In this document: one piece after another, positions 15,351 to 44,023 of the stretch
Numbering within the stretch: position 1 is the first letter of the stretch
Layout: each line of letters starts with the position of its first letter
Assembly (NCBI GenBank): GCA_035084275.1
Contig: CM068756.1
Coordinates: 14,880,001 to 14,944,000 of the forward strand
Length of the DNA: 64,000 nucleotides
Direction: 5' to 3'
Source of the DNA: Hydrolagus colliei
Lineage: Eukaryota
The notes under the pieces: generated by a model
Told to the model about the DNA's origin: nothing
What the model saw: only the letters and a program-made list of their open reading frames with translations
Databases searched by the model: none
Translations under genes and position numbers: made by a program

Positions 15351-16511
15351 TATTATGATGATGATTACTGGATCGGAACATACATGTAAACAATATTTCT
15401 GATTTCAAGGAGTGCATGCTCTAAATGGATTTCTGCATTTCCCAGACATTGTTTCCCTTGGAGGAATGGACTATCAATGATTGATTAAACTACTATATTG
15501 AAGTTCATTCAACAATTTATTTCTTGCAATTGAAAATGATTAAATCAATGCTGTTATATGCAATTACAATGCAGGATACAGATTAGAGATTTTAGGCGAG
15601 TGCTCCTACAGATATCACACACAAATGCAATAAAACGCTTATTCTTTGCAAAGGCATAACCGTCATCCTTACAAAAAACAATACCTCAATTTTAGTATAA
15701 CATAACACGCAATGTAGGAGACCTTGTGATCAAGTCTCGGTAGTTCACACATGCCTGTGAGCACAGTGTAAAATAGCCTGAAACTTGGGGTAGAATGACA
15801 AACTTGACTTCGTTTTCTGGTGGCAAATTTTAAACTTTTGTTTTATTATTATTTAATAAAATATTTTAAAAATTATTTAATAAACACTTTACAGATTACG
15901 TTTGGTCTACTATGTAATATTCATAATTGTCGGTTTATTGGAGACAAACTGCTCCAGGATGATGTACAATCTTTTGAGTCTTGAAGGGGAAGTGTGGGAA
16001 TGTTCTAATATTTACCGAGTGAAGAACAAGAGTTGATACTGTAGATATATTCCGACTCCTAAACGGTATAAATCGAATGAACTCAAATGTGTCTGTTATA
16101 ATATATCAGTCCACAATGTGTAATCTTTAGTTTCTTCCAATCGGTGCATTTCCACCAGCATAATTCAGTCGCTTTTCGTCGTTCCTTCCTTCTTTCATCT
16201 ATAATTAAACAAGCAATGCAATTGTGAACATTATCGATCTTCGATTATGTGGTTCTTTGCGATGGTTGCTGCTACTCACTCTAACAAATTGATAGTTGTA
16301 ACTGAAATGTTTACAACAAGACTGCAAATGTCAAATATTTTAGCTATACTGCAGTTTGAAATGGCAATTCAACATATTCGGACAGTACAATTTATATTTA
16401 TATCGCGCCTTTCACGTTGGAATGAGGTCTGAAAGCGCTTGACGCTATCGGTTGGGCACCCGAGCTGGAGACGGAAACCTAAGTGCGGTGTAAGACTCCG
16501 ACACAGAGCTG

Positions 16512-17104: not shown

Positions 17105-17219
17105 CTTTCAAGCTGTGAGATTTTAACATGGTCAACAATGAAGATGGTCAACACGATCACTACCAAGAAACAGAATATAAACCGTAAAATCGTCAGGTTC
17201 TCCGACATTCCACAACAAT
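17105..17219 (-). CDS. R2 exon 4: stalk plus TM with Arg (activating type)
   Basis: gttttctag|AT..GAA AG|GTATGG; DCCGMSENLTILRFIFCFLVVIVLTIFIVDHVKISQLE; phase 1 fits the C1 donor. Missed by the ORF track. Confidence 0.85.
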
Positions 17220-18058
17220 CTAGAAAACAAATATCGAAGCGTAAACTGTTTATGCGAAATCTGCTAGATAATTAGGATATATTGGGGAAATGCACACGTT
17301 TTTAATTAATTTCCATTGGAAGCTACAATGCAGTGGACGAATAATATAAACTGCGCATTCCATTAATTAAAAACAACTACAAATTGGTGTGAGAAACCAA
17401 TGCACAGTTTATTCGTGACCTATATTATGCTGTAGCGGTTGCCGCGTGACTATGTGCTCAGATTCAAATGTACCAGAGAAAATGACTATTTCGACTCGAG
17501 CCATGGAGGGGTGGCCGCCATTGTAATCCAAACTGATTCAATTGGACATCTACTATTATTCTAAAAAGTCTATGAAACATCTTACAATCTAATTTATTTC
17601 ACTGCAGTAATTGTTCTCATAAAGCAAAAGGCACCGAAAGATGTTATCCAAAATTGAATGAATTGATGAACGAATAGTATTTGTGTTTCCTTTGTGAACA
17701 TGTATCTGTCCAAAAGTACAATTTCTGATTTCAAACCTAACTGCAGGTGAAGCACGCGGGACTCTTTCATTTTACCACAGGACGAAACACGCTACTAACA
17801 TTTTAAAGGAAATATTTAACGTTTAATAACCAGATTATTCCTTCACTATTTCCTCAGTATTCTGCAAGAAAACTATGTATTTCTAATTTTATTTGGAAAT
17901 AGATTAAATATATTGCGTATAACACTTTAGTTAACAACAGTTGTGTTTAGCAAATTACTTGCGTTGGAAATAGAAACAGTAAATAAACAAAGGTAAATAC
18001 AATTTCCAGTAAGAAGATGCTCAACAAATAACAAAATAAAGACAAATAGGCATCCTAC

Positions 18059-18379
18059 CATCCAATCCTGTGTGTGGATTAGAAACGGTGTAACTGGCAA
18101 CCACTGGATTCGGGTGGCAGACATGAGATGCCAGACAGGTATAAACAACCTCGATCTCTGAAGGCTGGGTCTCTTCCACAGAGCTGGAGACTTCGTAAAG
18201 TCCATTTGAATTCTTTTCTTTCGTGACATTGATCCCAGTTCTAACTTCATTCCCATTTTCAAACCACGTGAGCGTTATATCCCCCGGGAAAAACGCAGCC
18301 GTTTTACACACAAGAGTCTGAGGCTTTGATGAATCACTTTCAGAATCTCTGGGGATTATCTTGAGCGGGGTCGGGGACA
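18059..18379 (-). CDS. R2 exon 3: Ig C1-set domain
   Basis: ctgccctacag|TG...GAT G|GTAGGA, 321 nt, phase 1-1; LVCKTAAFFPGDITLTWFENGNE...YTCLASH. Confidence 0.95.
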
Positions 18380-18963
18380 CTGTAGGGCAGAGAATGGAGC
18401 AGAATCGTGTCACTTGTGATCAGTTGGAATATAAACATTATTCTAATTTGAATTGTATAATAACTATTTCCTTGGAGGGTTTAGAAAGTTAAGGTACATA
18501 ATTTTAACATTGCGATTTTCAGAAATGGCGTGGAAATCTTCCCATCACATGGAATAATTTCGTTGTGAAATCCAGTCCACAGTGGCTTCAGATGCAGAAT
18601 TAAGTGGAATATTTAACAGGGAGGCAGACCATAGCTGTAAAGAGTTTGGAGAGAGGTGAAGAAATTGGAGTAAAAGCTCTGCCACCTTTCTGCAACAGAA
18701 AAACCTTTAGTTTGGGAGCATAACGTTCCGAATTCATTTCCGAAATCCATCTTCCTCCCCTTTCCGTCTCTACAGTCAATCCCAGCTGAACACACACCTC
18801 TCTGAGTGTCTTTTCGGCCACTCTCCCATCCCAGGTGGATTATAGCTCTGCCTGCCATGCATTCTTTGCCATGCGCTTCAAGCTGCTCTCCCAACAGTGA
18901 GTTATATTAATGTAAATTCAAGTGAATCTACAGTGAAGATCTCAGCCAAATCATGCCACTTAC

Positions 18964-19269
18964 CACAAACAGTTAATTTCGAACCAGTTCCATTAACCGC
19001 TCTATTATCCGGAATGACCAGGCTACAGTAATAGATCCCAGAGACCTGGATGTCTGCAGCCAGGAGATGGAAGAAGGCGCTTCTTGAACCATTGAAACCA
19101 AATTCTTTCGTTTGATCCTCTCTGAGGAATCCATTCGCTCCCAGCTTCCACCAGTGAACTCTCACACTCCTGGTGACAGGGAAGCCACAGGAGAACGTCG
19201 CCTTCTCACCTCTGTTGACAATGATATGATCCGGTTGTTGTGTCACTGTGAAGACTGTACAGTCAGCAG
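18964..19269 (-). CDS. R2 exon 2: V-set domain with germline J-like end
   Basis: tttctgacag|CT...TGT G|GTAAGT, 306 nt; ATFSC, HWW, SGIYYC, NGTGSKLTV. Confidence 0.95.
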
Positions 19270-19427
19270 CTGTCAGAAATAAATTCAAACATCGTTTTGC
19301 AACAAAATACAACGAAATACACACAGAGCAAGTTAGAGATGCTCTTGGCTTATTCATGGATCTAAATAAAATGAGAACTTGATCCTTGTTCTTTTTCCGA
19401 AAACTGATATATTGAATAATCACAAAC

Positions 19428-19485
19428 CTTTAGAAATGATCCACACTGTGAGAGACAGACACTGAAACACAACACTCGCCAACAT
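19428..19485 (-). CDS. R2 exon 1: signal peptide
   Basis: MLASVVFQCLSLTVWIISK then G|GTTTGT; 58 nt, phase 1. Confidence 0.9.
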
Positions 19486-19630
19486 CCTGATCTGTGACTG
19501 CGACTAACCCTAAAGCTGTGGCTGGTCTGTGACCAGGGGTTGGAGTTGATTGAGATGAGATGTGACAGTGATGTTTGACTTCCTGACCCTGTGGGCGCAG
19601 TTGGGCTTCCACTCTGATTTGATAACATGT
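19486..19630 (-). promoter_or_regulatory. R2 proximal promoter/5'UTR (conserved in R2, R4, R5, R6)
   Basis: Conserved block ttatcaaatcagag...tcaggaagtcaaacat (GATA, ETS) directly upstream of the ATG. Confidence 0.6.
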
Positions 19631-20324
19631 TTCCAGAATTTCGCCGGATGTGAGATACACTATATTAGTGAGACCCTACGAGAAGACAATTCGCCATTTG
19701 CTCACATGGCTGGAGAGCCAACTTTGTCTATTAGTTGTTGAGAACTCGTTTCTCTAACACTTGGGATCATTATCGTTGCTTTTCTCTCCTTCCTCCTGAA
19801 CTGGCTTCAGGGAATCTCCTAAGTTACCGTGACCAAAACTCTCCCCATCCCACTAGTCCTTGTCAGACTCCACTGGCTCCCTGTCACAAATTACACTCGT
19901 CTACAAAACACTGCCTGCCCTCCTTTCCAATGGCGTCAGCTCAGTTTTCATGAACTCCACCCTGACGCTGTGGAAGGCTCTCCCTGGTTCTCCCCACATT
20001 ACCCCCACTCCTTCCCCATTTTCATGTGATGATGGAAAATCTTCAATTTTGAGCGTACTTTCTGTCACCTTTCCCCCACCCCCGTCACAGAGCGACAGGC
20101 ACCGCTACTGTTCAGCTCTCGGAGAGTCTCAACCGTGTGAAGGACGCTGTATACATGTTGTTGTTTCATTCTATAATGGTATGAGCGAATGCTTCATTTT
20201 AGTCTTCAATTTAAATGTTTAAAAAAATCTTTCATGTCGACAAATGTCAATGAAACCAACCATTTGTAACTAGAAGAGAAGTCATTAAATAGTTCTCAAG
20301 AAAATCAGGCTGACATTGACATAG

Positions 20325-22414
20325 CCAAGTGAGAGCAGTTGAACGCACCTGGCTCAAATCTGGCCTCACGGTCCACCGGCAAATCTGGCTGGACCGCATC
20401 AAATTTTACCGCTCCGCCCTAGCCACCGCCAAATCAGCCTTCTACTCCAGGATAATCCTGGAAGCGAAGGACAACCACTGCCTCCTCTTCGCCACCACCA
20501 AACAGCTCCTCCGCCCCCCCCCCCCCCCCCCCCACCTCACCTCGCAGATCCTCTCCTCAAACGTTCGTTGTGAGGAGATGCTGGACTTCCTCGAGTCCAA
20601 AATTGAGAAAATCCGCTCTGCGGTTTTCTCCCCCCACCACTCCTCCACCTCCGCGCCCTCATCAGTTACTTCAACCCCTACTCACCCCCCATTTCACACT
20701 TTCAACCCCACCACCCCGCTTTCAATCACAAAAACAATCACCTCCATGAAACCCACCACAAGCTCATTGGACCCCATCCCCACCCACATCCTCCGCACCC
20801 AGCTCCATTTGTTAGCCCCGCTCATTTCTGACACCATTAACCTTTCCCTCTCCTCAGGAACCGTCCCTACCTCCCTTAAAACAGCCACCATCACCCCTAT
20901 CCTGAAGAAACCCTCCCTTGATGCGTCGCAACCATCAAGTTATCGACCCATCTCCAACCTCCCGTTTCTATCCAAGGTCCTTGAAAGAGTGGTTGCCTCC
21001 CAGCTCCGCTCTTTCCTTTCAAATCACTCACTTCTTGAACCCCTCCAATCAGGTTTCCGCCCTATCCACAGCACAGAAACTGCCCTGGTTAAGGTCACAA
21101 ATGACATCCTAACCGCCTGTGACCAGGGCTCCCTCTGCCTCCTCGTCCTCCTTGACCTGTCTGCTGCGTTCGACACAGTCGACCACACCATCCTCCTTCA
21201 ACGTCTTTCCTCCCACCTCAACCTTCAAGGCACAATCCTTGCTGGTTCCATTCTTATTTGACCCACCGTTTACATTTTGTTTCTTCCAATGGTTTTTCTT
21301 CAAACCCCCGCACAGTTTCCCACGGCGTTCCTCAGGGCTGTGTTTTAGGCCCTCTCCTTTTCATCCTTTACACGCTCCCTCTGGGTGACGTCATCCGCAG
21401 ACATGGGATAAATTTCCACATGTATGCGGATGACACCCAGTTGTACCTTTCTGCCTCATCCCTCAACCCCCAGATGATCGATGTTCTGACAGCATGTCTG
21501 TCCGACATCGAGTCGTGGACAGGGGACAACATTTTGCAATTGAAAGTGAATAAGACCGAGGCCCTGCTGATTGGCTCAAGCCAGCGCCTCCGCACATCGG
21601 GCGCTGCCAGCCTCAATATCCAAGGCTGCACTCTCCACCTCACAAAGCCAATCAGGGACCTCGGCATCATGTTCGATCAAAAACTTTCCTTCCTCCCCCA
21701 CATCTGCGCCTTGACCGGCACCGCCTATTTCCATCTGCGCAACATTGCCAGGCTCCGTAATTAGCTTACCCCCCACGCTGCCGAAACACTTGTGCACGCT
21801 TACATCACCTCACGGCTGGACTACGGAAATTCTCTCCTCGTCGGCCTCCCCAGTTCCTCCATTCATAGGCTGCAGGCCATCCAAAACTCTGCAGCCCGTG
21901 TACTATCCCGCACCCGCCTCCGCGACCACATAACCCCCACCCTCGCCCGTCTCCACTGGCTCCCCATCCTCCAGAGGATCGAGTTTAAGATCCTCGTGCT
22001 CACCTACAAGGCCTTATACGGCCTTTCCCCATCCTACTTAACCGATCTACTCTCCCCCTACACGCCCACCCGGACCCTCCGTTCAACAGGACTTGGCCTG
22101 CTCCAAGCCCCCCGCCCGAACCGCCCCACCATCGGAGGCCGGGCCTTCAGTTTCTCCGCTCCCACCTTATGGAATGCCATCCCTCAATCCCTTCGTTTCG
22201 TCTCTTCCCTTTCCTCTTTCAAGGCCGGTTTGAAGACTTTCCTCTTCGATCGTGCCTTTTGTTCCACCCCGAACTCTTTTACCTCCCCTTCGTGTTTCAC
22301 CCCTTCCCAAACACTCCCCTCCCAGCTCAGGTCACACGCCTCCTGTTCAGCGCCTTGGGACGTCCTCCCGATGTGAAAGGCGCTCTATAAATGTAAATTG
22401 TTGTTGTTGTTGTT
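20325..22414 (+). mobile_element. L2-clade LINE, 5'-truncated, RT region with one frameshift and one stop
   Basis: [50 protein letters not shown]; frameshift ~21243, TAG at 21762; (gtt)n tail. Confidence 0.95.
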
Positions 22415-22689
22415 GATGGTGAAGCTCCCAGCTCAAAGCGTTTAATGCAACATGTGCCCGAGTCCATTACATTTGACTGATTCCAGAACAGAAGGTTCCG
22501 TGGATTCCATGGATTTGATTTCCAATTGATGTAAAAATCTGTGCATGAGATATTGTTTTGAATGACAATGTTCAATCAGCTTGAAAATACATTCGATAAC
22601 TTATCAGCAATGCGTTTTAAGTCTCTTCCGTTTCGCAAAGACACTCGGTCAAAAGGACCAGTACTTAGTGTCAGCTTGTCTCAGCATTC

Positions 22690-23020
22690 TGCCCGCCGAG
22701 TCACAAGGTTATGGGTTCAATCTTGACCACAGTAGTTTAGAAAATTCCAGTAGTTACGGTGCTATCCTTAGAGTGAAACGTTCACCCGTAATCGGGTTTG
22801 CCTTTAGGGTAAAATCTCCTACATGGATATTGGAAAACAGAAATAATTATCTCCCAGTTTCCATGCCAAACATTCCGGATAAATGATATCGATCATTTAT
22901 TTCATGACTGATTGTTGGATATTGTTGTGAAAAATTGACTGCAGAGTTCTCCTACTGTAAAGTATCATTACATTAAATAATGAGAAACGCCTTTGCCGGT
23001 TTCAAAGCTTGATAAGAAGT
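22690..23020 (+). mobile_element. Old DeuSINE-like element
   Basis: tRNA-like gggttcaatc, ggtgctatccttagagtgaaacg, aaattgactgc core. Confidence 0.55.
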
Positions 23021-23344
23021 TTCTCAAATGGGGGAGATTATGATTATTACTATTCTCGGTCTTCACCAACCGGTGAAGCCTTGTATTAATGCTGCACTGA
23101 AACATATTTGCAGATGACATGATACCCTGATATTTTCTGTAGTTTGTCTCACTCTACAGTTCATTTATTGAAGCGAAGGAAACATATATCCAAGTGGATC
23201 TCTCAAACACATACATAGGGTGACGCCGAAAAGCTTCTGATGAGAAAAGGCTGAAGACCTAACTAACCATAAACGCAACCATTTCAGCATCACGATTCAG
23301 CTGTTTGAGAATCACGGTATAGTAAGATAGAAGTAAAGAAATAA

Positions 23345-23650
23345 TGAAACAAAGCAATACAGAAACATAGAAACCAGACTCAGCTATTCAGTTCCTTGAG
23401 CCTGTTCTGCCATTTTATAAGATCATGGTTGATCAGTACCTCAAGTCCAGTTACTCTCACACCCCCACCACTTCCCACCCATTGCCCCATATCCCTTAAA
23501 TACCCTGCCCTAATAAACATCTTTCTTCCTCTATTTTGAAAATGTGAATGGATCCAGGATCCACAGCCTATTGGGGGGAGAGTCCCAGACTTCCAGTAGC
23601 TTTTGGGTGAAAAACTGCTTCCTAAATTCGCTAGTAAATGGCCTAGCTTT
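23345..23650 (-). mobile_element. CR1 3' fragment (older family)
   Basis: acatagaaac tail; ccagacttcc...gtgaaaaactgcttcct. Confidence 0.6.
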
Positions 23651-24099
23651 AACACAAAAATAGGCAACAACAAAATAACAACAAAATTACGTTTCTGTAG
23701 CACCTTTCACATCGGGAGGATGAAGCCATCCTGTTCTGGATTATCCTTCTGCAGGAAATAGTTTCACTGTATCTACCCTCTCATAAAATCATACAAATAT
23801 GTAGCACCGAAGCAGGATAATTCAGCCCATTGGGTCTGTGCTCACTCTTTGAAAATAACTTTGCAAATCAATCACAAATCCTCACTCCCTTCGCACAGGC
23901 CTACAAATGTGTCCCCCCAAATAGTTATCTACTTCTTTCTTAAAAGTTGTTATTAGGCTTCATTCTGCCAACACCATCCTTGTCGGCCTCCCAAACTCCT
24001 CCTCGCATAGGCTGCAGAACACCCAGTTCTCTTCCCTTATTGTCATTCCAACCCCACTCCCACACACCCCTGCCCCCAACCCCCACCACCTCCACCCAA

Positions 24100-24815
24100 A
24101 CAACAACAACAACAACTTCAATTTATATAGCTCCCTCCACACTGGACGGCATCTCAGAGCGCTTCACAATAGCAGATCCCAGGACTGATCCTGGGGCAGG
24201 GGTAGAAAGGTAACCAAAGGCACAGTCGAAGAGAAAGGTCTTCAGCTGGGAACTGAAACTGAGAAAGGAGGCGGCGAGACAAAAGTAGTGAGGAAGGGAA
24301 TTCCAGAGCATCGGGGCATAGTGGCTGAAGGCCCAGCCGCCAAGGGTGGAGCAGAGGATTCGGGGGACATGGAGGAGGCCAGACCCAGTGGAGCGAAGGC
24401 AATGGGAGCTGGTTTGAAAAGAGAAGAGGTCAGAGAGGTAGGGGGGTGCAGAGGAGTGGAAGGATTTAAAAACATGGGTGAGGATCTTGAAGTCGATCCT
24501 CTTGGGGATAGGGAGCCAATGAAGTCTGGTAAGGACTGGGGTAATGGGGGAGTGAGGTTTGGTGCAGGTGAGTATGTGGGCGGCAGAGTTTTGGATGAGT
24601 TGGATTTTATGGATTGTGGTGGAGGGGAGACCGGTGAGGAGGGCATTGAAATAGTCCAGCCGTGAGGTGACGAAGGCATGGACCAAGGTTTCAGCGGCTT
24701 TTTGGGGTGAGATATTGCCAGAGACGAGCGATCCATTGGAGGGTGGAAGAAGGCGGTGCTGTGAGGGACTGGATGTGGGGGAGGAAGGACAGTTGGGGGT
24801 CAAACCTGATGCCAA
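24100..24815 (-). mobile_element. L2 3' fragment
   Basis: ORF 24123-24815: AETLVHAFVTSRLDY, LHWLPIPKRIDFKIL; (caa)n tail. Confidence 0.9.
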
Positions 24816-24869
24816 GGTTGTGCACAGGTTCGGAGAGTTTCAGGGGAGACCGAGAAGGTCTAAACTCCA

Positions 24870-25430
24870 ATTAAATTCCGCAATCCTATCAACCCCACTC
24901 TCACCCGATTCCACTGGCTTCCCATCACCCAGAGGAATCTATTCAAGGATTATAAAGCACTACATGGCCTTGCCTCATCTTATCTCTGCTTCCTTTTAAT
25001 CCCCTGCCATCACCCAGAGGCGTCAATTCAACATCCTAGTGCTCAAATTCAAAGTCCTCCATGGTCTCGCCCCACCCTTCATCTGCAACCTCCTAACCCC
25101 CTGCCAACCTCCCCACTCCTCTGCTCAGCAGGCTCTGGCCTGCTCCATAACTCCATAAATCCCAACCCACTTGCCCCAGCATTGGCGGTCGAACCTTCAG
25201 CCACTCTGTCCTAATCTCTGGAATACCATCCAGCTCTCCCTCCACCTCATCTTCTCCCTAGCCTCCTTCAAGTCCTCCATCAAGACCCTGCACTTCGAGA
25301 GTGCCATCAGTCAACCCAAATCCGCCCCTTTCCCTCCAACCTCCACTTCACAGACCCCAGCTCGGATCTGAACCAATTTGACTGTCCAGCACCTTGGGAT
25401 GACATGAAAGGCTCTTTTCAAGTGCAATTT
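24870..25430 (+). mobile_element. L2 3' fragments
   Basis: cactggcttcccatc, ttcaagtcctccatcaagacc, family tail. Confidence 0.7.
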
Positions 25431-26084
25431 TGCTGTGGTTATCCATTATTTATTTTATAAATATATAAGGGTTCGAATTTCATGTGTAGTGAGCCAGGAC
25501 AAAGAAGAAGATGTGCAGAAAGGTAACCTCTATGTTGTTACATAAACAATGCAATATGGTGCACAATGTCTGTAGTCATTTAACAACTCTTTGAGAAGCA
25601 AATAATAGAAAAGCCGCTAATGTATAGAAAATGTTGAAATCAATTGTGCTCTGTGTTTCATCTGAGTGAATGAATCACTGACACTGGAATTATTTACCTG
25701 TATTGACATTTTCAGATAGCAGAATGAATAGAAATTTAGCATTTAGTTGTTTCATGTTTGGTTTGTTTTTTTAGTGGTTCAATAGCATTTGAACAGTTCA
25801 ACGCCCATGCCATGCCTTTTTCACTGTGTTGTATGAATTTCACCATACTTCATTGATTCTCTTTTAAGATAGCCCATATCAACAGTTTTTTTTAAAGAAT
25901 GGTGAAAACACAGAGTGATTAGGCAAGATATATTCGTGCAATCTATGTTTATTTTTTATTGAAAGGCTGTTTGAATATGTTGCACAAAACAGAACTTCCT
26001 AACTTTTATATTCATGTTTTGGTATAATAGCAGTTAAAGCGCAATTCAAATCTCCGAATGAGGCATCCAAATAATTACAATACC

Positions 26085-26800
26085 AACAACAGCAAAATTA
26101 CATTTGTAGAAAACCTTTCATATCAGAAGGATGTCCCAAGATAATCAACAGTCAGGGTTCGGGACCTGAACGGGAGGGCGGGAGTGGGCAGACAAGAGGG
26201 TAACTGAACACATGATCACACTGGTGGGAGTGATGTGGTCGTGGAGCAGGGTGCGGGTAAGGACACAAGGAGGGTTTTGGGACCATTCTTGATGGAGACA
26301 AGGGAGGGAGCAAGGCAAAGGGATTTGGAGATGGAGTTCCAAAGTGTAGGGCCAGAGGCTGAAGGCCCAGCCACCAATGGTAGGGCAGGTCATGTGAGCA
26401 AAACAAGGAGCAAGCTGGAGCCTACTGAATGGAGGGAGCGGACAGGTTGATAGCAGGTCAGAGAGGTAGGAAGGGCCAAGCTCTTGGTGCACCTTCAAAA
26501 TGAGGACAAGGATTTTGAATATGATCGTCTGAGGAATGGGGAGACAATAGACCTGGGTGAGGGTGGGGATGGTGGCGATGCAGAGCCTGTGAAGGAGAGG
26601 ACATGAGCTGTAGAGTTTTGGATGATCTGCCACTTGTGGAGGGAAAATTTGGGGAGGCCAACAAGGAAGGAGTTGCAGTAGTCAAGCCTAGAGGTGATAA
26701 AGGCATGTGTAAGGGTTTCAGCAGCCAGAGGGTGAGGCAGTGACGGAGACAGGCGATTGTTGCTGAGGTGATGGAAAGCAATGCTCATCATGGAATGAAT
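26085..26800 (-). mobile_element. L2 3' fragment, degraded
   Basis: AETLTHAFITSRLDYCNS in ORF 26495-26791. Confidence 0.8.
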
Positions 26801-27029
26801 ATGGAGAAAAGACAGCTCAGGGACAAATAAGGCAATGTAATTAGTTACATTTAAAAAATGTTATCAGATTAGCACAAAAAAAGTTTTCACAATTCAGTGT
26901 GGTTAAATAGGTGTGGTGAGCAATATTTTCCAAGAATTTGTTTAAAGCATATCATGTAAATATTCAATAAATGCAGTTATGTTTCAAACACATGCAAGGA
27001 CCATTGCAACAACAATAAAAAAAATTATA

Positions 27030-27465
27030 GAGCACTTTTCATGTTGGGAAGACGTCCCAAGGAGCTGAACAATCAGGATGTGACCCAAGCAAGGGAGAGA
27101 GGCAGGGCTGGGGGTGGAGAGGTGGGAGAGAGATAAGAGAGGTGGGAGAAAGTTAGGAGTGAGGCAGAAGGCACGGTAAACAAAAGACGGTCTTGGGGCC
27201 GGCATTGAAGGAAGAGAGGAAGAGAGCAAGACAAAGCGACTGTGGGATGGAGTTCCAGAGTGTGGGAGCAGAGAGGCTGAAAACCCATCCACCAATGGTC
27301 GGGCAGGGGACATGGAGCAGTCCAGAGCCTGCTGAATGTAGGGGGCGGGGAGCTTCATATGGGGACAGCAATTCGGAGAGGTGGTGGGGGTGGGGGGATG
27401 CAAGGCCATGAATGGCTTTGAAGGTGAGAATGAGGATATTGAATTTGATCCTCTGGGGGATCAAT
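27030..27465 (-). mobile_element. L2 3' fragment
   Basis: IPQRIKFNILILTFKAIHGL...APTLWNSIP in ORF 27153-27464. Confidence 0.8.
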
Positions 27466-27469
27466 GAAT

Positions 27470-27990
27470 CAATGAAAACTTACATTTATATAACGCATTT
27501 CACGTTGAGAGGATGTCCCAAGGCACTGTATGGTCAGATAGGGACAAGAGCAGGGAGGGAAGGGTCAGGGCAGGATGAAGTAGAGTAGAAGGGTGTATAT
27601 TTGTGGGTGAAACGCAGCAGCCAAATTGCGTATAGCAGTGTCCCACAAACACCATGGAAGTGGAGTTAAGGGAAAAAGGGGGGAAAGAGGGTGAAGCGAG
27701 GGCTCGGGGTAGGAGGAAGGAGAACAGGAAAACTGACCATATTTGTGGGTGAAATGTGGCAACCAAATTGCACACAAAATTGTCCCACAACCAATCGTGG
27801 AAGTGGGGCCAGGGAGGAAAGGCAGAGAAGAGGGTAAGGGGGGAGAGAGAGGGAAATGTAGGTGGGGTTAAAATCAGGGTGAAGTGAGGAGAAAGTGGGA
27901 TAAGGGGGAAGAGGGAGAACGTGGAGAGAGAAGAAAAAGGGGGGAAGATTAGGCGGCAAAAGGGGGAATTAATCAACAACAATAACAACA
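27470..27990 (-). mobile_element. Composite SINE-like element: pyrimidine-rich body, core, L2 tail (relatives at ~38440-38720 + and 49430-49700 -)
   Basis: Repeated core atatttgtggg...gcagccaaattgc flanked by purine-rich tracts and an L2-type tail. Confidence 0.55.
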
Positions 27991-28294
27991 AAATCAATAA
28001 CAATAACAATCAATAATCGTCCCTCAACCGCTCCTTGTCCTTGCCGTCCACCTGGACGATCTTTAAAATGGTGGCAACTGGGCCCAGTATGGTGATGGGA
28101 CCCAAAACCAACCAGCTCTTCAGCTGGGGAGCCAATGGAGCCGGGTGAGGGTGGGAGTGATTTGGTCACAGTGGTTGGTGCAGGTGAGGACACAAGAATT
28201 ACTTGTTGCAGCCCAAAACTAACATGGCACATCATTCAGCAAATTGAAAAACTACATTTAATATACACCAATATCAGTTTCAGTGCCGGTTGCA

Positions 28295-28461
28295 TTACTT
28301 GGATTTTGGTTCCCTGGAGATAGCTCCTGCTCCATGGTTTCTCACATGGACCTCTGCGTACTCTGTATTCTTAGCAGTACTTTTAGGTTTCCTGTTTTTT
28401 TGGAGGGATGTAAATCCAGAACACTATATGTCAGATTGTTCCCAGCTGCTCTTTGATTAGT
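28295..28461 (-). pseudogene. R3 terminal cytoplasmic exon (LTYSVL and TEYAEV) with a 1-nt frameshift
   Basis: atcttttcag|ACT: TNQRAAGNNLTYSVLDLHPSKKTG, frameshift, KPKSTAKNTEYAEVHVRNHGAGAISREPKSK*; homolog of 51240 and 63953. Confidence 0.8.
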
Positions 28462-29217
28462 CTGAAAAGATAAAGTTTGACAAGTTAATTTCATCAATTT
28501 GTGTTTATTTAGTTTTCAAAAATCTACTCTAATATTTGCCAATTATTATTTACAGCATGGTTTACCCCATAGTTCCTTTGATAAAGGCACTGCTCCTCAC
28601 TGAACTAATCAGAATCTAGCCAGTATAATCCTGTATACACGCTGGCTGGCCACCACGCACATGCACATTTGTGACACAGTGGCACAGTCCTGACTAAATC
28701 CAATGTTTCCTCGGCTGGCTGGCCCCACCCGCAATGCACCCTTGGGAAAGTCCAATGACTCTTCGGCCTCCTAGCATTCTGATGGCATTGCTTGGTAAAC
28801 AGAAGAGAGAGAGAGTCTCACTTCCAGGACCAAAGGTAAAATAATTTAGCCAAGCTGTGGTTTTATTGCTTTGTTGCTTTATTTTTTATCGCTTTATTGC
28901 TGTTTATTTATTGCTCTCTCTGTCTCTTCTGGAAGAGTCATCAGACTTTCCCAATAGGGCATTGCACACGGTGGGGCGGTGGGGGGGGAGTGGGGAGCGA
29001 GAAACGGGCCAACCAATTGTAGCCCGCCTCAGTACATACCTACATACCTTGCATTGGTCGGGTGTGGATGCGCCTGGAGGCTTGAGGTGGGTAAACTGTG
29101 GCTTGATTCCCCTATCCCCACTTTTCCCATTACTTGTTAACCTTAACCAATGTGATTTTACTGATTGTGCAGTTTTCCAGGAACGTAATCCCCGCAATCG
29201 ATGAGGGTTAATTGTAC

Positions 29218-29328
29218 CTCAGCATACACAACGTTCTCATCTTGTTTTGGGGGTTTTGGAGTTTTTTTGCAACGATTCAAATCTATTTTGGCGTAAGTCA
29301 CCATCTCATTCCCTGCTCCCTGCAGTGT
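29218..29328 (-). pseudogene. R3 cytoplasmic two-Tyr module
   Basis: ttttacag|TLQGAGNEMVTYAKIDLNRCKKTPKPPKQDENVVYAE|GTACAA, 111 nt, phase 0-0. Confidence 0.85.
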
Positions 29329-29778
29329 CTGTAAAACAGAAAATATAGAGTGTTGTCATCACTGATCTGGAGATCCCTGAATAAGTCTTCACCAAATGGC
29401 CTCAAGAATAAATATTTGCACCTAAGTTTAACATATTCAACAAATTCAACATTCATATTCTTTTAGCAGGGAGAATCATCCAGTTTAGCAGCTGTTCAGT
29501 GATCTACAGAAATCTGGGGTGCGCATTTCCATATATTGGTGATGTCCCAGTGCCTCATAGATGGACACGTAGAATAAATAATCTTAAACAAAAAAAAGTA
29601 TGTAAGTATGCAGTGGCAGATTGCCAGCATCATATGGTATAACAGCCCAGGACACTGCAAGAGAGTGAAGAATAGAGGACAAAGAAAGATTAACCACAAA
29701 ATGTACAAACTAGTTTAATGTAAACATTGAAGTGAGGTCCTCTATATATAATGTAGCAGATAGCATTCTGATATATAC

Positions 29779-29889
29779 CTGGGCATACACAACATTCTCG
29801 TCTTATTTTTTCGGTCTTGGAGTTTTTTTGCAACGATTGAAATCCATTTTGGCGTAAGTCACCGACTCAGTCCCTGCTCCCTGCAGCGT
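29779..29889 (-). pseudogene. R3 cytoplasmic two-Tyr module with in-frame TAA
   Basis: TLQGAGTESVTYAKMDFNRCKKTPRPKK*DENVVYAQ|GTATAT; CAA to TAA relative to the 29218 copy. Confidence 0.85.
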
Positions 29890-30361
29890 CTGTAACAGAA
29901 TGTGATTCAGTGTTGCCATCACTGGTCTGGAGATTCCTGGATAAATATTGATGAAGATTCCCTCCAACATCAATATTTTCACCTAAGCTTAAAATATTCA
30001 ACATTTAGCTTCCGGATATTTTAGTAGTAAGAATCATCCAGTGAAGCAGATGTTCGATGATCTACAGAAATATGGGCTGTGCATTTCCATATATGAGTGA
30101 TGTCTCAGTGCCTCATAGATTGACAGACACAATAACCAGTCTGATACAAAAAAAACGAGTTGACCATACAGTGGCAGATTGTCAGCAGCATACAATAGAA
30201 TAGGATGGGGACAGAGAGTGAAGATTAGAGGACGAAGAAAGATTAACCACAAAAATATACAAACCATCTTACAGTAAATACTGAATTCAGTTCTACTCTT
30301 TACTGAAGCCAAGATAATTAAATTCGATGAATTGTTTTGATTTTGTGTTTCTCAGATATAC

Positions 30362-30472
30362 CTGGGCATACACAGTCCTTTCTTCTTGCCTTTTAGGTTT
30401 TGAACTTTTCTTGGAACTGGTCAAATTTAACGTGACATAAGCCACCAGTTCATTCTCTGCTCTGTGCTTTGC
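30362..30472 (-). pseudogene. R3 cytoplasmic two-Tyr module (ITIM VAYVTL)
   Basis: tttcctag|AKHRAENELVAYVTLNLTSSKKSSKPKRQEERTVYAQ|GTATAT, 111 nt. Confidence 0.85.
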
Positions 30473-30889
30473 CTAGGAAACAGAATGTAATCATAACAAT
30501 AAAAATACATTACATTTCTTTAGCATCTTTCAGGTCTGCATGATGTCCGAAGTCACTGATAGATTATTGTCTCTGCCATCTAAATTGTTGCATAAGTACT
30601 AATCAGTAAGCCCTTGAGAATAAATAATTGCACCAATGTTTATCATTTTTAATATATAGTTTGCAAATATTTTACAAGCAGAGTTACAGTATTATTAAAT
30701 ACTCTATCACCAAATGCCATGAAACTGGGTACCTAATTTTCATTAATACATCGAGTCAACGTGGATGCGCATATGGAATGTATTTAACGTGGTTTTATTT
30801 CTTAATTGTGAACAATATCTTTCCAGAATTCAATATCTGAATTCTATTTTCAGTTGAATTATCTGCTGGAATGAATTTTTTAAATGTAC

Positions 30890-30933
30890 CTGTTCTTCGC
30901 AGTGACCCAACATGTTCTGGTTTCTGCACGAGC
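30890..30933 (-). pseudogene. R3 44-nt phase-1 to phase-0 linker exon
   Basis: ccttctaag|GSCRNQNMLGHCEEQ|GTACAT; same length and alignable to R5 48518-48561. Confidence 0.75.
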
Positions 30934-31689
30934 CTTAGAAGGAAATTTTAAAAATTAAATATTCACTCAATTTTACATAAATATTTTCAACTATAATTTG
31001 GTTAAACTGAATAAAAAGTGACTCAAAGACCACAAACTGCCTGAGCCTGGTTTTTAAAATGTAGCTGTCCTCTATCTCAAAACTGATAGTTTGAATCTAC
31101 ATGCAAAATTTCAACATTTTAACACAACTACCTCTATCTTGCCAAACTTCTCTTATTCCTTCTCGTACTGATGCCCACTGTTCTCTGGAACACCATCTCT
31201 GAGTGTGTCAGATTACCTCTTTCTCAAGCATGCTTCAAATTGTTGATGATTTGATGAACTGAGATAATTTGTGGTATTGAATATAAAACCAAAGGGGGTG
31301 GTAATGTTAAGATGAAAAATCGTTAAATAGAATAGACAGGAATACCCTATTGAGTGTGATCATTGAGGCAAAATGTACATTCACTTTCACAATAGTACTC
31401 GAAGAAATAACCTAAAACTTTTCAAATGTAAAGGTATTAGGGCCAAACTGGTAAATTGGGACTGAAAACTTTGCTCAAAAAAGCAGTACAGATATAATGA
31501 GTTTCTTGTGTGCTGTAAATTTGTGTGGTTCTATCGAGCGTTTTGTATTTAGATTCAAAGGTGTTTCCTGTCCCCACACCCAATTACACCAAAAGATTAA
31601 TTAGCATTCCATTCATGAATTCCCATTCATTTTGGGTTTTCCACAAGGTATGAATAGCACTTTACATGTTTCTCTAATTCCCTTACTCT

Positions 31690-32035
31690 TTGTTTCCCTT
31701 TAAAACAATATCCATGGTTATAGCATCTTTCTCATCTTCTAATTGCTTCACAGAGTATATTGCAAAGTGAATTGCCTGTATATTTGTGGGTGAAAAGAGG
31801 TAGCCAATTGTGCACAGCAATGTCCCACAAACCAACTTTTTATTTGTTTTTGTTTGAAGGATTATTATCCCAGAAAAATGATCCGTCATTCAACTGATAA
31901 CCAGGTTTCTATCTACCGCTGGGTGAACAGACACGGGTGGAGTAAGGAAAATTCCTCTACGCTTTGCCCTGCTGGGTACAGAACTCGGGTCTCTCATTTT
32001 CTAAGCGAGCGCTCTAACAACTGCGCAACAGGCAA
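31690..32035 (-). mobile_element. tRNA-derived SINE
   Basis: ggagtaaggaaa, agccaattgtgcacagc core. Confidence 0.75.
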
Positions 32036-32564
32036 CAGGACTGCACAGATTCAGCACTAATGGTGACCACTAGTGTGAACCTGATCTCAGGTTAGCGAGG
32101 AGACAATTGATGACAAGAGATTGGTACCAGCTGGCATTGCTGTCTCCCGCCCGCCTCACTTTCTCTCAATCCATGCCTGGCTATCACAAATAGAATGTGA
32201 TCATCTTTATCACAGGTGAATGGGATGTGAATTATTTCAAGAGCGAACACTATGGGCTGAATGACCTTCTATGCTGTAAATTTCTGCAGTTCAATCACAA
32301 CAGATTTCCGACACTCCTGGCATGGAAATTTCTGATTCAACATGCAGCTAGATACATACAGGATGAGTTTTGTGAGGGCATTTGCATTTTTGAATTAATC
32401 ACAAAATATAAATCATTTGTAAAACTTGAACGAATAATAATAATCATTTGATATAGCGCCACATGTCAATTTCTCTCCCATTGTCACCTCTCATCCATGA
32501 AATGAATTATTCTATTAAATCAAACATTTACAAATAACTTAAATAAAATAGGAACATATCTTAC

Positions 32565-32666
32565 CTTTCCCTTTTTTAAATTGGCATTGTTTCCCAATAA
32601 TGATCAAAAGTAGCAGGAATATCAACCCTCCAACTGCACATCCAGCGATCAGTTGAGGGCCAATCA
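32565..32666 (-). pseudogene. R3 TM exon, uncharged (inhibitory type)
   Basis: gttcttgtag|VIGPQLIAGCAVGGLIFLLLLIIIGKQCQFKKGK G|GTAAGA, 102 nt, phase 1-1. Confidence 0.9.
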
Positions 32667-33459
32667 CTACAAGAACAGCATAAACTGAATGTGTTAGTAA
32701 ATCCAGCAATGAGGTACACTTGCATTATCATATGAGAAACTTTCAAGCTGATTTTTTGTTGAAAAAAATATTTTATAATTCTCCCGGCAGGTTTGTTCCA
32801 GTCAAACACACATTTGATCAAAAGCCATCCAGCCCAGCTCATCTGCGACTGATAGCAAGACTGAGGAACAAAGGCTAATCTGTGCCATATATTGCTACTA
32901 ACTGGAGAGTACCAAATGATGAAAATTTAACACCCAATTTGAAGGGAAGTATTTATCTTTTATAACAACAAAATAGGATATACATTAAAAGATGTACATT
33001 TCATGCCTCAGTTCTGATTGAGCAGAGGTCTCAGAATGTAATATTGTTAAGGACAATTTAATAGAGTAAGAGATGAAGGAGTAAATTCATAGAATGACAT
33101 AAAGTTACTGGAATCTTATGGCACAATTCGGCTATTTGAGTCTGCAAGCACTTTAAAAAGTGCAATTCAATCCCGCTACCCAGCTCTCTCCCCATAACCG
33201 CGAAAACCCATCCTCTCCAGATTAATGTCTACCTCTCTTGTAAAGTTCAATGTCATTGTATCAATATTTCAATGAAGTATTCTGCTTAATATAACTTTAA
33301 TTTTCTGTATCTATAAATGTGTATATATTTTGGGTTACAATTTAGGTAATACCAATTGTGTTTCGGAAATTACCAGCGGATAAACGAATTCAAATACAAT
33401 TTCCAATAACGAGATGTTTAAAAAACAACGAAAGACAAAAAGATAAGTAGGCATCATGC

Positions 33460-33663
33460 CATCTAAAATACTACAGATGTTGGAAACCTGAAAACAAAAA
33501 CAGAAATCGCTGGGAACACTCAGCGGGTCAGCCAGCATCTATAGAGAAAGGAAAAGCGATTCAACGTTTCAGATCTGAGTTCTGACAAAGGGTCCTGAAC
33601 GAGAAACGGTGACTCACATTTCCTTCCTGCAACAATGCGGCCTGACCTGCTGAGTGCTCCCAG
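33460..33663 (-). mobile_element. Palindromic element inserted at the R3 C1 splice donor
   Basis: 23-bp inverted arms at 33509-33531 and 33642-33664 with 2 mismatches; possible GATG duplication. Confidence 0.75.
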
Positions 33664-33984
33664 CATCCAATCCTGTGTTGGGTTCAGAAACGGTGCAACT
33701 GGCAACCTCTGGATTCGTAAGGCTGACATGAGATGCCAGACAGTTATAAACAACCCCACTCTCTAAAGGCTGAGTCTCTTCCATAGAGCTGGAAACGTTG
33801 TGAAGCCCATTTGAATTATTGTTTTTCCGGAAATTAATCCCAGTTTTAATTTCATTCCCATTTTTAAACCACGTGGGCGTTATATCCCCCGGGAAAAACG
33901 CAACAGTTTCACACACAAGAGTCAGAGAATTTGATGAATCTCTTTCAGGATTTCTGGTGAATATCTTCAGCGGAGTCGGGGGCA
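33664..33984 (-). pseudogene. R3 C1-set exon; donor destroyed, no upstream V or leader
   Basis: ctgtcctccag|TG; LVCETVAFFPGDITPTWFKNGNE...YNCLASH; 321 nt like R2. Confidence 0.9.
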
Positions 33985-35359
33985 CTGGAGGACAGAGAAA
34001 GGAGCAGAATCGTGTTACTTCTAATCAGTTGAAATATAAAACGTTATTCTAATTTGAATTGTATAATAATTATTTGCTTGGAACATTATAATCTGGTTTG
34101 TAATGCCACGAATGTGATTTTTCAGTTTTAAAAGTGTTGATGTCCTTTGTTGGGAACGATGTGTTCAGTTTAGGAGATAACGTCGCCTTGGGGGGACTAA
34201 AGGGGGTACATCATGTTAATATTGTGGCTCTCAGAAATGATGTGGAACCCTTCTTATCACATGAATATTGTGAAGGTGTGAAATCCAGTCGCACGAGTGG
34301 CCATAGATTCAGAATTAAGTGGAATATTTTAAAGGAAGACAGTACAGTTGTAAAGAATGTGGAGATCGGTGAAGAAATTTGAGTAAACGTTCTGCCACCA
34401 TTCCAGAGCGACAACAACCCACATTTATATATCGCCTTCGGGTAGGAAAGTAACGTTAGATGCAGATTTGAATAGAGATTTCGCCATCAATAGAGAAATA
34501 AGTAAAATATCCCAACATTCTCACCAACATTAATATCCCTCTACTGTATTTCTATAACATTTCAACTAATTTACAAGAGGTACAGCAGGTTTCTTCGAAA
34601 CCGTTTTCTGGCTGTTTGTGGGATATTGTTGTGGGTGGGTGAACTGTTCCGGTTTTGTAAAATGTTAACTTCTGCCTTGAATATTAATAATAATAATCCT
34701 TGCAGTTGATATATCATCGCTGATATACATTTACTTTAGAACCACTTAATGGCGTCACTTCTCACTGCCGATGATGTAAGTTGTTCACAGTTATCTCTCT
34801 GAAAGTTGCTCTCTGCAATTCATTTGAAGACTCGGTTCAAACCTGCACTGATACCGTTATGCAGTGAGACAACAATCATTTGAGTTCTGCAGCGCCCTTC
34901 ACAAGGATTGGGTAAAAGCGTGGCCACCGATGTAGGAAATGAGAGGACATGAAACACACCGGAGCCGGGAGCCAATGAGCGGTGGCTGCGGGTAGCGGGG
35001 GGTGAGCTGGGCGGGGAGGTGGGGACTGACATGCAGGGTTAGTACAACAACAACAAAGAACACCTTTCACGTCAGGAGGACGAGGATCTTGATGTCGATC
35101 CGTTGTGTCCTAAGTATCCAGTGGAGCCTGGCAAGGGTTGGTGGGAGGGTGAGAAGCTTTGGTCACCTCTACATGGGGGCTGCCCAAGAGCCAGTCAAGG
35201 GGGAGAAGAGAAAAGCAACGAGACCGATCCCAAGTGTTCGACGAACAATCTGTCAACAAAGAATGGATAACCTGGGCTCGTATTTTTGTGAAAAGACTAC
35301 GTGTTCAGCTCTCCTACAGTCTCAATAATACAGTAATCTTCACGCACAAAGAAAGTCTG

Positions 35360-35507: not shown

Positions 35508-35565
35508 ATGTTGGCGAGTGTTGTGTTTCAGTGTCTGTCTCTCACAGTGTGGATCATTTCTAAAG
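35508..35565 (+). CDS. R4 exon 1: signal peptide
   Basis: MLASVVFQCLSLTVWIISK G|GTTGGT. Confidence 0.9.
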
Positions 35566-35664
35566 GTTGGTGACTATTCACTATCCCAGTGATCTCAAAC
35601 ACAAAGTGTGTGTCTCTGTCACAGTATTTTGTTTCAAAACAATGTTTGACTTTATTTCTGACAG

Positions 35665-35943
35665 TTGCTGACGGTACATTGATCACAGTAACACAACAAC
35701 CCGAACAGATCACTGTCAACAGAGGTGAAGATGTGACGTTAACCTGCACCATCTCTAGCACAGCGAACGTGAAAATGCACTGGTGGAAACAGGGAGAGAA
35801 AACATTTGATGTCGAATTTTCTGGAAGGGCCGTCTTCAAACTCCACGATGCAGGTCTCCAGGACTCTGGGATCTATTACTGTTCAGTGGCATTTAACGGA
35901 AGTAAAACAGTGAATGGAACTGGATGCCGTTTAACTGTATGTG
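35665..35943 (+). CDS. R4 exon 2: VJ-type V domain with a 9-aa in-frame deletion
   Basis: 279 nt; VTLTC, HWW, DSGIYYC, NGTGCRLTVC. Confidence 0.95.
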
Positions 35944-36336
35944 GTAAGTGACATGCCAAGGCAGAGATAGTAACTTTATATTTAGTGGAACCATAATTTA
36001 CATTTATGTGAGGCTTCTCGCTGTTGGGGAGGTTCTGAAAGGCTTTACAAAGGCTGAGGAGCAACCAGAGCTGACACTGAGCTGGGAGGGGAGAGTTGAG
36101 GAACGTCTTCAGGTGGGATTTCAGAGGAGAGAGGGGAGGGAGAGAAGGATGGATTTTGATAAAGAATTCTGGAAGTTTGGGGCTGTGTGGTTCAACTTTG
36201 CCCTGTACATGAACATTTCCAAAAGTTGGGGTGACACAAAATAATGGCCGCAATATTCAAATTAAGGTGCAACTAGAAATGTATATTAATTAACCATTAA
36301 TTCTATGGTTTTCTATTCTATTCTACTGTTTTCCGC

Positions 36337-36575
36337 GGAGTCTTGTAGAGCCGTGGTTAGAGCACTCACCTTACAAGCGTGAGACCGGTATTCGAATCCA
36401 GCCAGGTCAGGGCGAAACCTTCGGCAAGTTTCCTGACTCCACACGGCTAATATTGAACAACAACAAAGTCGTCCGCAAATATACAGTTAATTTACTTTAC
36501 AGCATATTCTGTGAGGCGCTTTGAGATATCTAGAAGTTATGAAAAGCGCTATATCATGGATTAACATTATTATTG
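36337..36575 (+). mobile_element. tRNA-derived SINE (duplicated at 44821-45100 plus 47006-47035)
   Basis: gtggttagagcactcaccttacaagcg...attcgaatcc; family tail. Confidence 0.85.
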
Positions 36576-36866
36576 TTAGTTAAACTCTACATTTTATGTT
36601 TCCTGTAAACTTGGAAATTCTGCCTCTTATATCAGAAATAAGATTACATTTCTTTGTCAATTTATTATGGGTTAGTGGGAGTCGCCTTGAACAATTACAC
36701 TGATAACTAGCCAGCTCCTCGTTCACTTTATAGCTGTAGAGACATTTCTTTGTGCAAAATTGCCTGCCGTGTATACCCACAGATAAAGGCAATAAACTTC
36801 ATAGTATATCCTGCCAAGAGATTTCAGATTTGATCAGACTTGATATCAAAGATTTTTCTATTCCAG

Positions 36867-37178
36867 TGCCCCCAATTCCTCTGAATATTTCGTCCAAATC
36901 TCCTCCAAGAGATTCATCTGTGTTTCTGACCCTCGTGTGTGAAACGGCAGCGTTTTACCCGGAGAATCTCACCTTCACATGGTCTAAAAACGGCACCGAA
37001 ATTACAACCGGGATAATCAGCACTGAATGGCAGAACCCGGAGGGATTGTATGAAGCTTCCAGCTCAGTGGAGGAGACACAGCCTGTCCAGAATGGGACAG
37101 TTTATACCTGTCAGGTGTCTCACATCAGCCTCCAGACTCCAGCAATTGGCAACTACACGGTTCAGTTTCTTCCTCAAG
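36867..37178 (+). CDS. R4 exon 3: C1-set domain
   Basis: ctattccag|TG...CAA G|GTAGGT, 312 nt; LVCETAAFYPENLTFTWSKNG...YTCQVSH. Confidence 0.95.
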
Positions 37179-43965: not shown

Positions 43966-44023
43966 ATGTTGGCGAGTGTTGTGTTTCAGTGTCTGTCTCT
44001 CACAGTGTGGATCATTTCTAAAG
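43966..44023 (+). CDS. R5 exon 1: signal peptide
   Basis: Identical 58-nt leader, G|GTTTGT. Confidence 0.9.

Follow-up and report, generated by a model that had tools for sequence, protein, structure and literature searches.

The window analyzed, i.e., the whole 64,000-nucleotide stretch of Hydrolagus colliei DNA (assembly GCA_035084275.1, contig CM068756.1, positions 14,880,001 to 14,944,000), contains a cluster of related immunoglobulin (Ig) superfamily receptor genes, interspersed with fragments of long interspersed element (LINE) reverse transcriptases. The gene considered here, R2, is located on the minus strand between positions 17105 and 19485 and was described in the initial annotation as an apparently intact activating receptor. 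The cluster comprises two intact activating-type genes, R2 and gene A, together with inhibitory genes containing exons for immunoreceptor tyrosine-based inhibitory motifs (ITIM), and relics.

R2 is represented by four exons of 58, 306, 321 and 115 nucleotides (nt) with AG/GT borders, which join in frame; each internal exon has a pyrimidine tract and AG ahead of it and GT(A/R)(G/T)G after it. Together the exons comprise 800 nt, i.e., 266 codons and 2 nt, with no stop codons. Exon 1 (58 nt, 19428–19485), ending in phase 1, begins with the ATG and encodes the opening portion of a split leader, MLASVVFQCLSLTVWIISK, which reads MLASVVFQCLSLTVWIISK followed by A across exons 1 and 2; its translation matches that of the leader exons at 35508, 43966 and 58501. 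The conserved 5′ flank at 19486–19876 is the putative promoter and 5′ untranslated region of the gene. Exon 2 (306 nt, 18964–19269) encodes the end of the leader and a single-exon VJ domain with C47, W59-W60, YYC101 and the J-like motif NGTGSKLTV, the presence of which within the V-domain exon indicates a non-rearranging VJ exon. A C1-set domain with LVC146, LTW160 and YTC203LASH207 is encoded by exon 3 (321 nt, 18059–18379). Exon 4 (115 nt, 17105–17219), ending in phase 2, encodes a stalk with C230-C231, the transmembrane (TM) segment and the beginning of the tail (DDCCGMSENLTILRFIFCFLVVIVLTIFIVDHVKISQLE); the stalk reads DDCCGMSEN, and the tail begins with DHVKISQLE. The assignment of this exon is supported by tblastn, in which its sole matches were the TM exons of P0004 and P0012 from Heptranchias, and by a predicted helix. 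The canonical Cys pairs are C47/C101 in the V domain and C146/C203 in the C1 domain, and the canonical Trp residues are W59-W60 and W160, respectively. The four-exon in-frame structure, Cys pairs and Trp residues listed in the initial annotation were all reproduced on the minus strand.

Pfam analysis of the R2 product identified the C1-set domain with an E-value of 1.5e-13, while the first domain was matched by general Ig models, among them Ig_3 (5e-11). The AlphaFold2 model, computed from an 11-sequence family alignment, contains two domains of beta-sandwich fold and, at residues 234–265, a TM helix, with a mean pLDDT of 81; the region of the V exon reaches about 93, and values below 50 occur only in the stalk (225–234). 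In a Foldseek search with this model, Ig light chains ranked best. The Pfam domains, homologues with E-values down to 9.5e-80 and the folded model indicate that R2 is not a chance open reading frame (ORF). All 34 family-invariant alignment columns are retained in R2.

The predicted membrane span of R2, LTILRFIFCFLVVIVLTIFIV, comprises residues L237–V257 (17134–17196) and is identical to the string given in the initial annotation. Its fifth residue is R241, encoded by the codon CGG at 17184–17182. The span is followed at the inner membrane end by D258-H259 (17128–17133), and the order of D or E followed by H or Y was found in all 13 module-bearing sequences. The R2 module is accordingly R241-x16-D258-H259, with Arg at position 5 of a 21-residue span, in the outer third of the membrane, and with no Lys in the TM segment. 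The motif R-x16-(D/E)(H/Y) with identical spacing was found in eight shark representatives, namely, P0004, P0012, P0024, P0027, P0039, P0041, P0048 and P0061, belonging to the genera Heptranchias, Scyliorhinus, Heterodontus, Carcharodon and Chiloscyllium, and in three exons of the window, those of R2, gene A and the relic at 813–910. The 16 residues between Arg and (D/E)(H/Y) are hydrophobic or small. The recurrence of the same spacing in sharks argues for selection on the arginine, and since the module is common to R2 and sharks, it goes back to the last ancestor shared by extant cartilaginous fish. That an Arg within the membrane keeps a fixed position in holocephalans and elasmobranchs alike is strong evidence for a conserved intramembrane interaction.

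Two classes of receptors are distinguished in the family by their TM segments and tails. Module-bearing proteins have predicted tails of 13–56 amino acids (aa), and an ITIM-like motif was found in one of ten such proteins, in contrast to 19 of the 40 uncharged-TM models (Fisher p=0.037); the single ITIM-like string in the module class belongs to a probable read-through model. The two classes also differ in tail length (Mann–Whitney p=0.008). The uncharged-TM models with ITIM-like motifs carry from one to four of them each, and the uncharged-TM paralogues possess tandem motifs of the type LxYAxL...VYAEI/TEYAxL.

The 3′ end of R2 was read in two ways. Read-through of exon 4 gives the tail ...LERYGGILCFKIILWFHSQLFVS and a stop codon, while splicing to the AG at 16200–16199 gives ...LER and a stop; both readings of a short tail in the initial annotation are correct. 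The candidate terminal exon (15934–16198, minus strand), which adds Arg and then TGA and contains AATAAA at 15939–15934, is an unsupported guess. A search for ITIM exons in the 17 kb downstream of R2 to the window edge revealed none, and every reading of the 3′ end results in a short motif-free tail. No homology was found between the region downstream of R2 and the regions downstream of gene A and the 813–910 relic. An alternative uncharged TM exon in intron 3 of R2 was considered and rejected; the sole hydrophobic stretch there is a T-rich sequence immediately after the donor.

The family was delimited by word-indexed and exhaustive HMMER searches of protein representatives, which yielded 716 representatives with E<1e-3, of which 49 had E<1e-30. 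The best E-values for R2, 3e-79 and 9.5e-80, were obtained with Callorhinchus P0001. The top matches are proteins of Callorhinchus milii with only 50–64% identity, and no protein of the window itself was found among the database matches. Compared with the leader of Callorhinchus P0002, the R2 leader shows a T-V versus L difference. For every family member looked up, the source was chondrichthyan, namely, Callorhinchus, Heptranchias, Heterodontus, Scyliorhinus, Carcharodon, two species of Chiloscyllium, Hemiscyllium, Cetorhinus, Mobula and Pristis. The automatic names of these proteins include SIRP-alpha-like, SIRP-beta-1-like, tapasin-related, NCR3 ligand 1-like, Ig lambda-1 light chain-like, TCR beta-like and MHC class II beta-like; such a mixture is what an uncurated VJ–C1 family looks like. 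A literature search for a published name of the R2 family or for shark adaptors bearing immunoreceptor tyrosine-based activation motifs (ITAM) found no description of the family.

The exon plan of split leader, VJ, C1 and TM exon is common to R2, the window genes A, B and C and the Heptranchias locus L001, in which the module is likewise located on its own exon. No R module was found in the Callorhinchus models that were retrieved and inspected. Among the C. milii family models, P0002 is frameshifted, and P0013 and P0075 run past the C1 donor into the intron; the corresponding read-through in R2 would be ...GLDGRMPICLYFVIC followed by a stop. Such models indicate that automatic annotation seems to overlook the small TM exon of the R type, and the activating forms appear to be missed or mislabeled by automatic gene models.

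Outside cartilaginous fish, matches to SIRPs and Ig lambda constant regions were obtained with E-values of about 1e-21 to 1e-13; the nearest receptor matches are SIRPs of coelacanth (5e-17), lungfish, pig, birds and tuatara. The V domain of R2 is best matched among solved structures by the V domains of TCR alpha/beta and Ig light chains, with alignments running through the J region and E of about 3e-4. In the PDB, the C1 domain matches Ig C domains, SIRP-alpha (1.2e-12), SIRP-gamma (about 1e-12) and UrIg2 (9dmx, 8e-12) about equally.

Gene A (35508–38988, plus strand) is the second intact activating-type gene, with exons at 35508–35565, 35665–35943, 36867–37178 and 38877–38988. Its TM segment is MCRLGFSGLIILLLAVIIVDYFDINPL, and its TM exon reads ...FIEMCRLGFSGLIILLLAVIIVDYFDINPL, containing the module R-x16-D-Y; the stop codon TAA (38984–38986) is located 2 nt before a still-intact GT donor. 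The position of this TAA inside the TM exon makes the coding sequence of gene A complete. A third R-type TM exon, FIEMFRFRFSALLILLVSGILVDYFKINPLCSG, is located at 813–910 on the plus strand and has about 75% DNA identity to the TM exon of gene A; its V and C1 exons, if any, would lie before the window start. Homology between this relic and gene A extends for more than 3 kb downstream of the TM exons. The 5′ part of the 813–910 exon is replaced by an antisense tRNA-derived sequence resembling a short interspersed element (SINE) at 740–812, for which ARAGORN made no tRNA call; related repeat copies are located at about 15215–15085 and 13094–13057.

Gene B (43966–50549, plus strand), of the inhibitory type, contains a leader exon, a VJ exon (44123–44428), a C1 exon (47322–47633), an uncharged TM exon (48260–48364) and ITIM-like exons at 48791–48919 and 50412–50549. 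The V domain of gene A is 9 aa shorter than that of gene B and is otherwise nearly identical to it; genes A and B are a classic activating/inhibitory pair with near-identical ectodomains. In the V exon of gene B, the sequence GIYYSSV has Ser in place of the second canonical Cys, and gene B may be defective as an inhibitory receptor through the loss of this residue. The VJ–C1 intron of gene B contains a 560-aa reverse-transcriptase ORF on the minus strand (45193–46875).

Gene C (58501–64000, plus strand), also inhibitory in type, contains a leader exon, VJ (58658–58963), C1 (59784–60095), uncharged TM (61601–61714) and ITIM (62979–63116) exons, and a further ITIM exon beginning at 63938 and running off the window. 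Genes B and C contain tandem tyrosine motifs of the LTYAALDF...VVYAEIQ type. ARAGORN reported tRNA-Val(CAC) at 55961–56032 (plus strand) and tRNA-Ala(TGC) at 61324–61411 (minus strand), the latter in the C1–TM intron of gene C; both calls may be SINE heads, not tRNA genes.

Gene D (28381–33985, minus strand) contains a C1 exon (33985–33665), an uncharged TM exon (32666–32565) and ITIM exons at 29889–29776, 29328–29209 and 28461–28381, while a leader and a V exon are absent. Two conserved C1 residues are changed, GLYEVSS to GLHNVSS and ITLTW to ITPTW. Gene D is probably a pseudogene. It is arranged head-to-head with gene A. In genes B, C and D, the ITIM exons follow uncharged TM exons. The C1 exon of R2 with its flanks and intron has 86% DNA identity to the C1 exon of gene D (33985–33665), its closest relative in the window, which indicates that R2 is the activating relative of the gene D lineage, a lineage that is apparently dead. 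The region 20000–28000 between gene D and R2 shows GC skew from −0.38 to +0.42, LINE reverse-transcriptase fragments at 20329–22376 (plus strand) and, on the minus strand, long pseudo-ORFs rich in proline and serine; nested retroelements are probably located there.

The four leader exons at 19428–19485, 35508–35565, 43966–44023 and 58501–58558 have identical translations. The regions of about 390 bp upstream of the ATGs of R2 and genes A, B and C are 79–89% identical in DNA, while the V exons have only about 44% identity in protein; the R2 block 19876–19403 has 81–89% DNA identity to the upstream regions of the three plus-strand genes. Identical leaders and conserved upstream regions as against divergent V exons point to gene conversion or to strong constraint on the promoter and leader. 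The V exons of all four window genes end in ...T(V/A)C (in R2, 18964–18966), while those of the elasmobranch homologues and Callorhinchus P0002 end in ...TVY; the ending TVC also occurs in some other Callorhinchus models. The Cys ending gives an extra unpaired cysteine at the V–C1 junction in four of four window genes.

Among known systems, SIRPs appear from sequence similarity to be the nearest bony-vertebrate relatives of the R2 family. Similar to R2 and its paralogues, they are a paired activating/inhibitory multigene family with a non-rearranging VJ-type V domain and C1-set domains, their inhibitory members carry tandem tyrosine motifs of the LTYAxL...xEYAxx type, and most of the NCBI automatic names in the R2 family are SIRP-alpha-like or SIRP-beta1-like. 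In contrast to the V–C1–C1 arrangement of SIRPs, R2 has one C1 domain, with a single C1 exon between the VJ and TM exons, and its V domain is no closer to SIRP V domains than to those of TCR or Ig. SIRP-beta1 signals through DAP12 via a Lys in the middle of the TM segment, whereas the Arg of R2 is located in the outer third.

The FcR-gamma-coupled receptors with the NxxR signature (LILRA2, PIR-A, NKp46, GPVI, OSCAR, Fc-alpha-RI and XFLs) resemble R2 in the N-terminal TM Arg, the short motif-free tail, the separate TM exon and the inhibitory paralogues alongside; their ectodomains are built of C2/I-type Ig domains, unlike the VJ–C1 ectodomain of R2. The family would work like SIRP-alpha/beta and the FcR-gamma-coupled receptors of the leukocyte receptor complex (LRC), yet lacks their defining features, namely, the number of C1 domains, the Lys for DAP12 and NxxR. 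NKp30 (NCR3) has a VJ domain that does not rearrange, with a J motif resembling GxGTxLxV, and a TM Arg, which in NKp30 couples to CD3-zeta or FcR-gamma; it differs from R2 in being a single conserved gene with no C1 domain, while R2 has a C1-set domain and belongs to a paired multigene family. The comparison revealed no specific similarity of sequence between NKp30 and R2.

UrIg and UrIg2 of cartilaginous fish share with R2 the single-exon VJ domain, split leader and C1-type domains, but are single genes with no paired activating/inhibitory forms. UrIg is secreted and consists of VJ and three C1 domains, and UrIg2 consists of VJ and nine or more C1 domains (PMC12227049). The assignment of R2 to UrIg or UrIg2 was rejected, as R2 has one C1 exon, and those genes have at least three C1 domains. 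TCR and Ig light chains resemble R2 in the V + C1 fold and the J motif, provide the best matches among solved structures and, in the case of TCR chains, have a basic TM residue; the identity of R2 to them is only about 20–25%. The fusion of V and J in one germline exon of R2 means that no rearrangement takes place, in contrast to genes with separate V and J segments.

In receptors with no signaling motifs, a TM Arg or Lys pairs with the TM Asp of an adaptor: NKp46 and NKp30 use CD3-zeta or FcR-gamma, and NKp44 uses DAP12 (PMC6514059). In the NxxR ‘TM1’ module, Arg at the N-terminal end of the TM segment provides the association with FcR-gamma in LILRA2, PIR-A, NKp46, GPVI and OSCAR, in Fc-alpha-R and, by experiment, in the XFLs of Xenopus (PMC2413239). 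Arg occupies the N-terminal end of the TM segment in R2 as well. T cells of the bamboo shark express cd247, encoding CD3-zeta (PMC11372145).

With the gene integrity, domain identity, family membership and TM-module conservation of R2 and the lack of ITIM exons established, R2 is on balance probably a functional gene, intact in its sequence, for a receptor of the activating type within a paired family confined to cartilaginous fish, which would be coupled to an ITAM adaptor. The description of R2 as an intact activating-type receptor, as far as the sequence allows judgment, is upheld by the basic residue that the TM segment carries in its outer third, the short motif-free tail, the absence of a downstream ITIM exon and the module shared with sharks. 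The best inference is that R2 pairs with an ITAM adaptor bearing a membrane Asp, of the FcR-gamma or CD3-zeta type. The VJ–C1 ectodomain would bind a ligand, and, as R2 has no signaling motif of its own, R241 would pair with the TM Asp of a disulfide-linked dimer of the ITAM-bearing adaptor. The location of Arg at the fifth of 21 TM residues favors a partner of the FcR-gamma/CD3-zeta type. Such an adaptor would be needed for signaling and, probably, for efficient surface expression, and the paralogues with uncharged TM segments and tandem ITIM tails would provide the opposing signal. The expression of R2, the binding and identity of its adaptor and a possible dimerization through C230/C231 are likewise inferred.

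A number of observations weigh against this interpretation. R2 departs from nearly invariant family positions in D95V, by which DSG becomes VSG within the motif D-x-G-x-Y-x-C, and in S209C and L210H. The TM exon lacks a stop codon ahead of its phase-2 end and has GAA where gene A has TAA, and a search of the 17 kb downstream of it for a shark-type terminal exon, GK(G/E)RLxISASAAxNSxR, gave only short matches at the level of chance; the Heptranchias homologue has a short last exon 1.65 kb past its TM exon. In two representatives, P0009 and P0029, Gln replaces Arg at the same spacing, and some members can accordingly lose the charge. The sequence N236-L-T-I-L-R241 has Thr at −3 and Asn at −5 relative to Arg, by which R2 does not belong to the NxxR module; among the homologues, only P0061 (INIFR) fits this signature. 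The search for chondrichthyan FcR-gamma, made with a human query, gave 150 candidates dominated by mammals, birds and frogs and is uninformative for sharks.

The absence of the NxxR signature and the position of SIRPs as the nearest bony-vertebrate relatives would also agree with an activating R2 coupled to a DAP12/DAP10-type adaptor, as SIRP-beta1, instead of FcR-gamma or CD3-zeta. Such coupling is rather unlikely, as a partner of DAP12 typically has its Lys close to the center of the TM segment, whereas R2 and all its homologues with the basic residue have Arg at position 5 of about 21, a placement as in the partners of FcR-gamma and CD3-zeta. R2 might also be expressed and not signal through an ITAM adaptor. 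It would then act, like SIRP-gamma, as a decoy, a co-receptor or a molecule of adhesion, and its TM Arg and Asp-His would be used for assembly with a different partner, or for retention and quality control. The motif-free tail and the tolerated Gln are consistent with this role, as is the Asp-His after the TM segment, which shows the same degree of conservation and for which the adaptor model offers no explanation; however, the strict position of Arg from holocephalans to elasmobranchs and the split into receptors with an R-type TM segment and short tail and those with a plain TM segment and ITIM are the classical signature of adaptor-coupled paired receptors, and a non-signaling R2 is accordingly considered unlikely.

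A copy that is silent in transcription or has recently died, with the ORF still open, is an improbable reading of R2, although the cluster contains relics (gene D with no V exon, gene B with the lost V-domain Cys, and 813–910), and R2 itself has lost the stop codon of the gene A type in the TM exon, has no recognizable terminal exon, carries D95V at a structural Asp and contains six cysteines outside both canonical pairs, namely, C23, C121, C209, C230, C231 and C244. Against decay stand the 800 nt open over four exons with perfect splice sites, the retention of 34 of 34 invariant residues, the conserved 5′ flank and the confident AlphaFold2 model. The layout of VJ, C1, stalk Cys and basic TM segment is also that of a TCR chain, the V domain best matches TCR alpha/beta V domains, and the overall fold best matches Ig light chains, from which R2 could be taken for one chain of a non-rearranging TCR-like heterodimer, paired via the stalk cysteines and assembled with CD3-type modules. 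This is very improbable: the similarities are weak (E of about 3e-4), the stalk cysteines C230/C231 are not conserved in homologues, no distinct class of partner chains is visible in the cluster, and the activating/inhibitory split of the family is typical of innate paired receptors.

The initial annotation also named R2 as the best candidate for functional work. This choice is doubtful, since gene A is equally intact, with the same module, a complete coding sequence and a matched inhibitory partner adjacent to it, while the 3′ end of R2 lacks support and D95V affects its V domain.

R2 is an expected type of gene rather than a surprise, a paired Ig-superfamily receptor from an understudied lineage. 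Such receptors have been investigated in depth in mammals, birds, frogs and teleosts, but hardly at all in the cartilaginous fish, which are the most ancient lineage to possess Ig, TCR and MHC. A chimaera-type genome is shown here to contain a compact cluster of VJ–C1 receptors, and the locus of R2 and gene A provides a defined system for studying when the Arg–Asp wiring of receptors to adaptors arose and whether it is used by a non-rearranging VJ–C1 chain resembling those of antigen receptors. In mammalian TM1 receptors, an acidic residue is located 17 positions past Arg (R-x16-E), with the same spacing as in R-x16-D of R2; a text search for the TM strings of Fc-alpha-RI, LILRA2, NKp46 and GPVI to confirm this spacing found nothing. 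A bolder proposal, quite unlikely at present, is that the R-x16-acidic TM exon of the VJ–C1 family is homologous, and not merely convergent, to the FcR-gamma/CD3-zeta-coupling TM module of the LRC/FcR receptors and perhaps also to the Arg by which TCR-alpha binds zeta. If this homology were true, an adaptor-coupled non-rearranging VJ–C1 receptor would have existed at the base of jawed vertebrates, and the family would represent a living model of an antigen-receptor chain before RAG, already wired to ITAM signaling.

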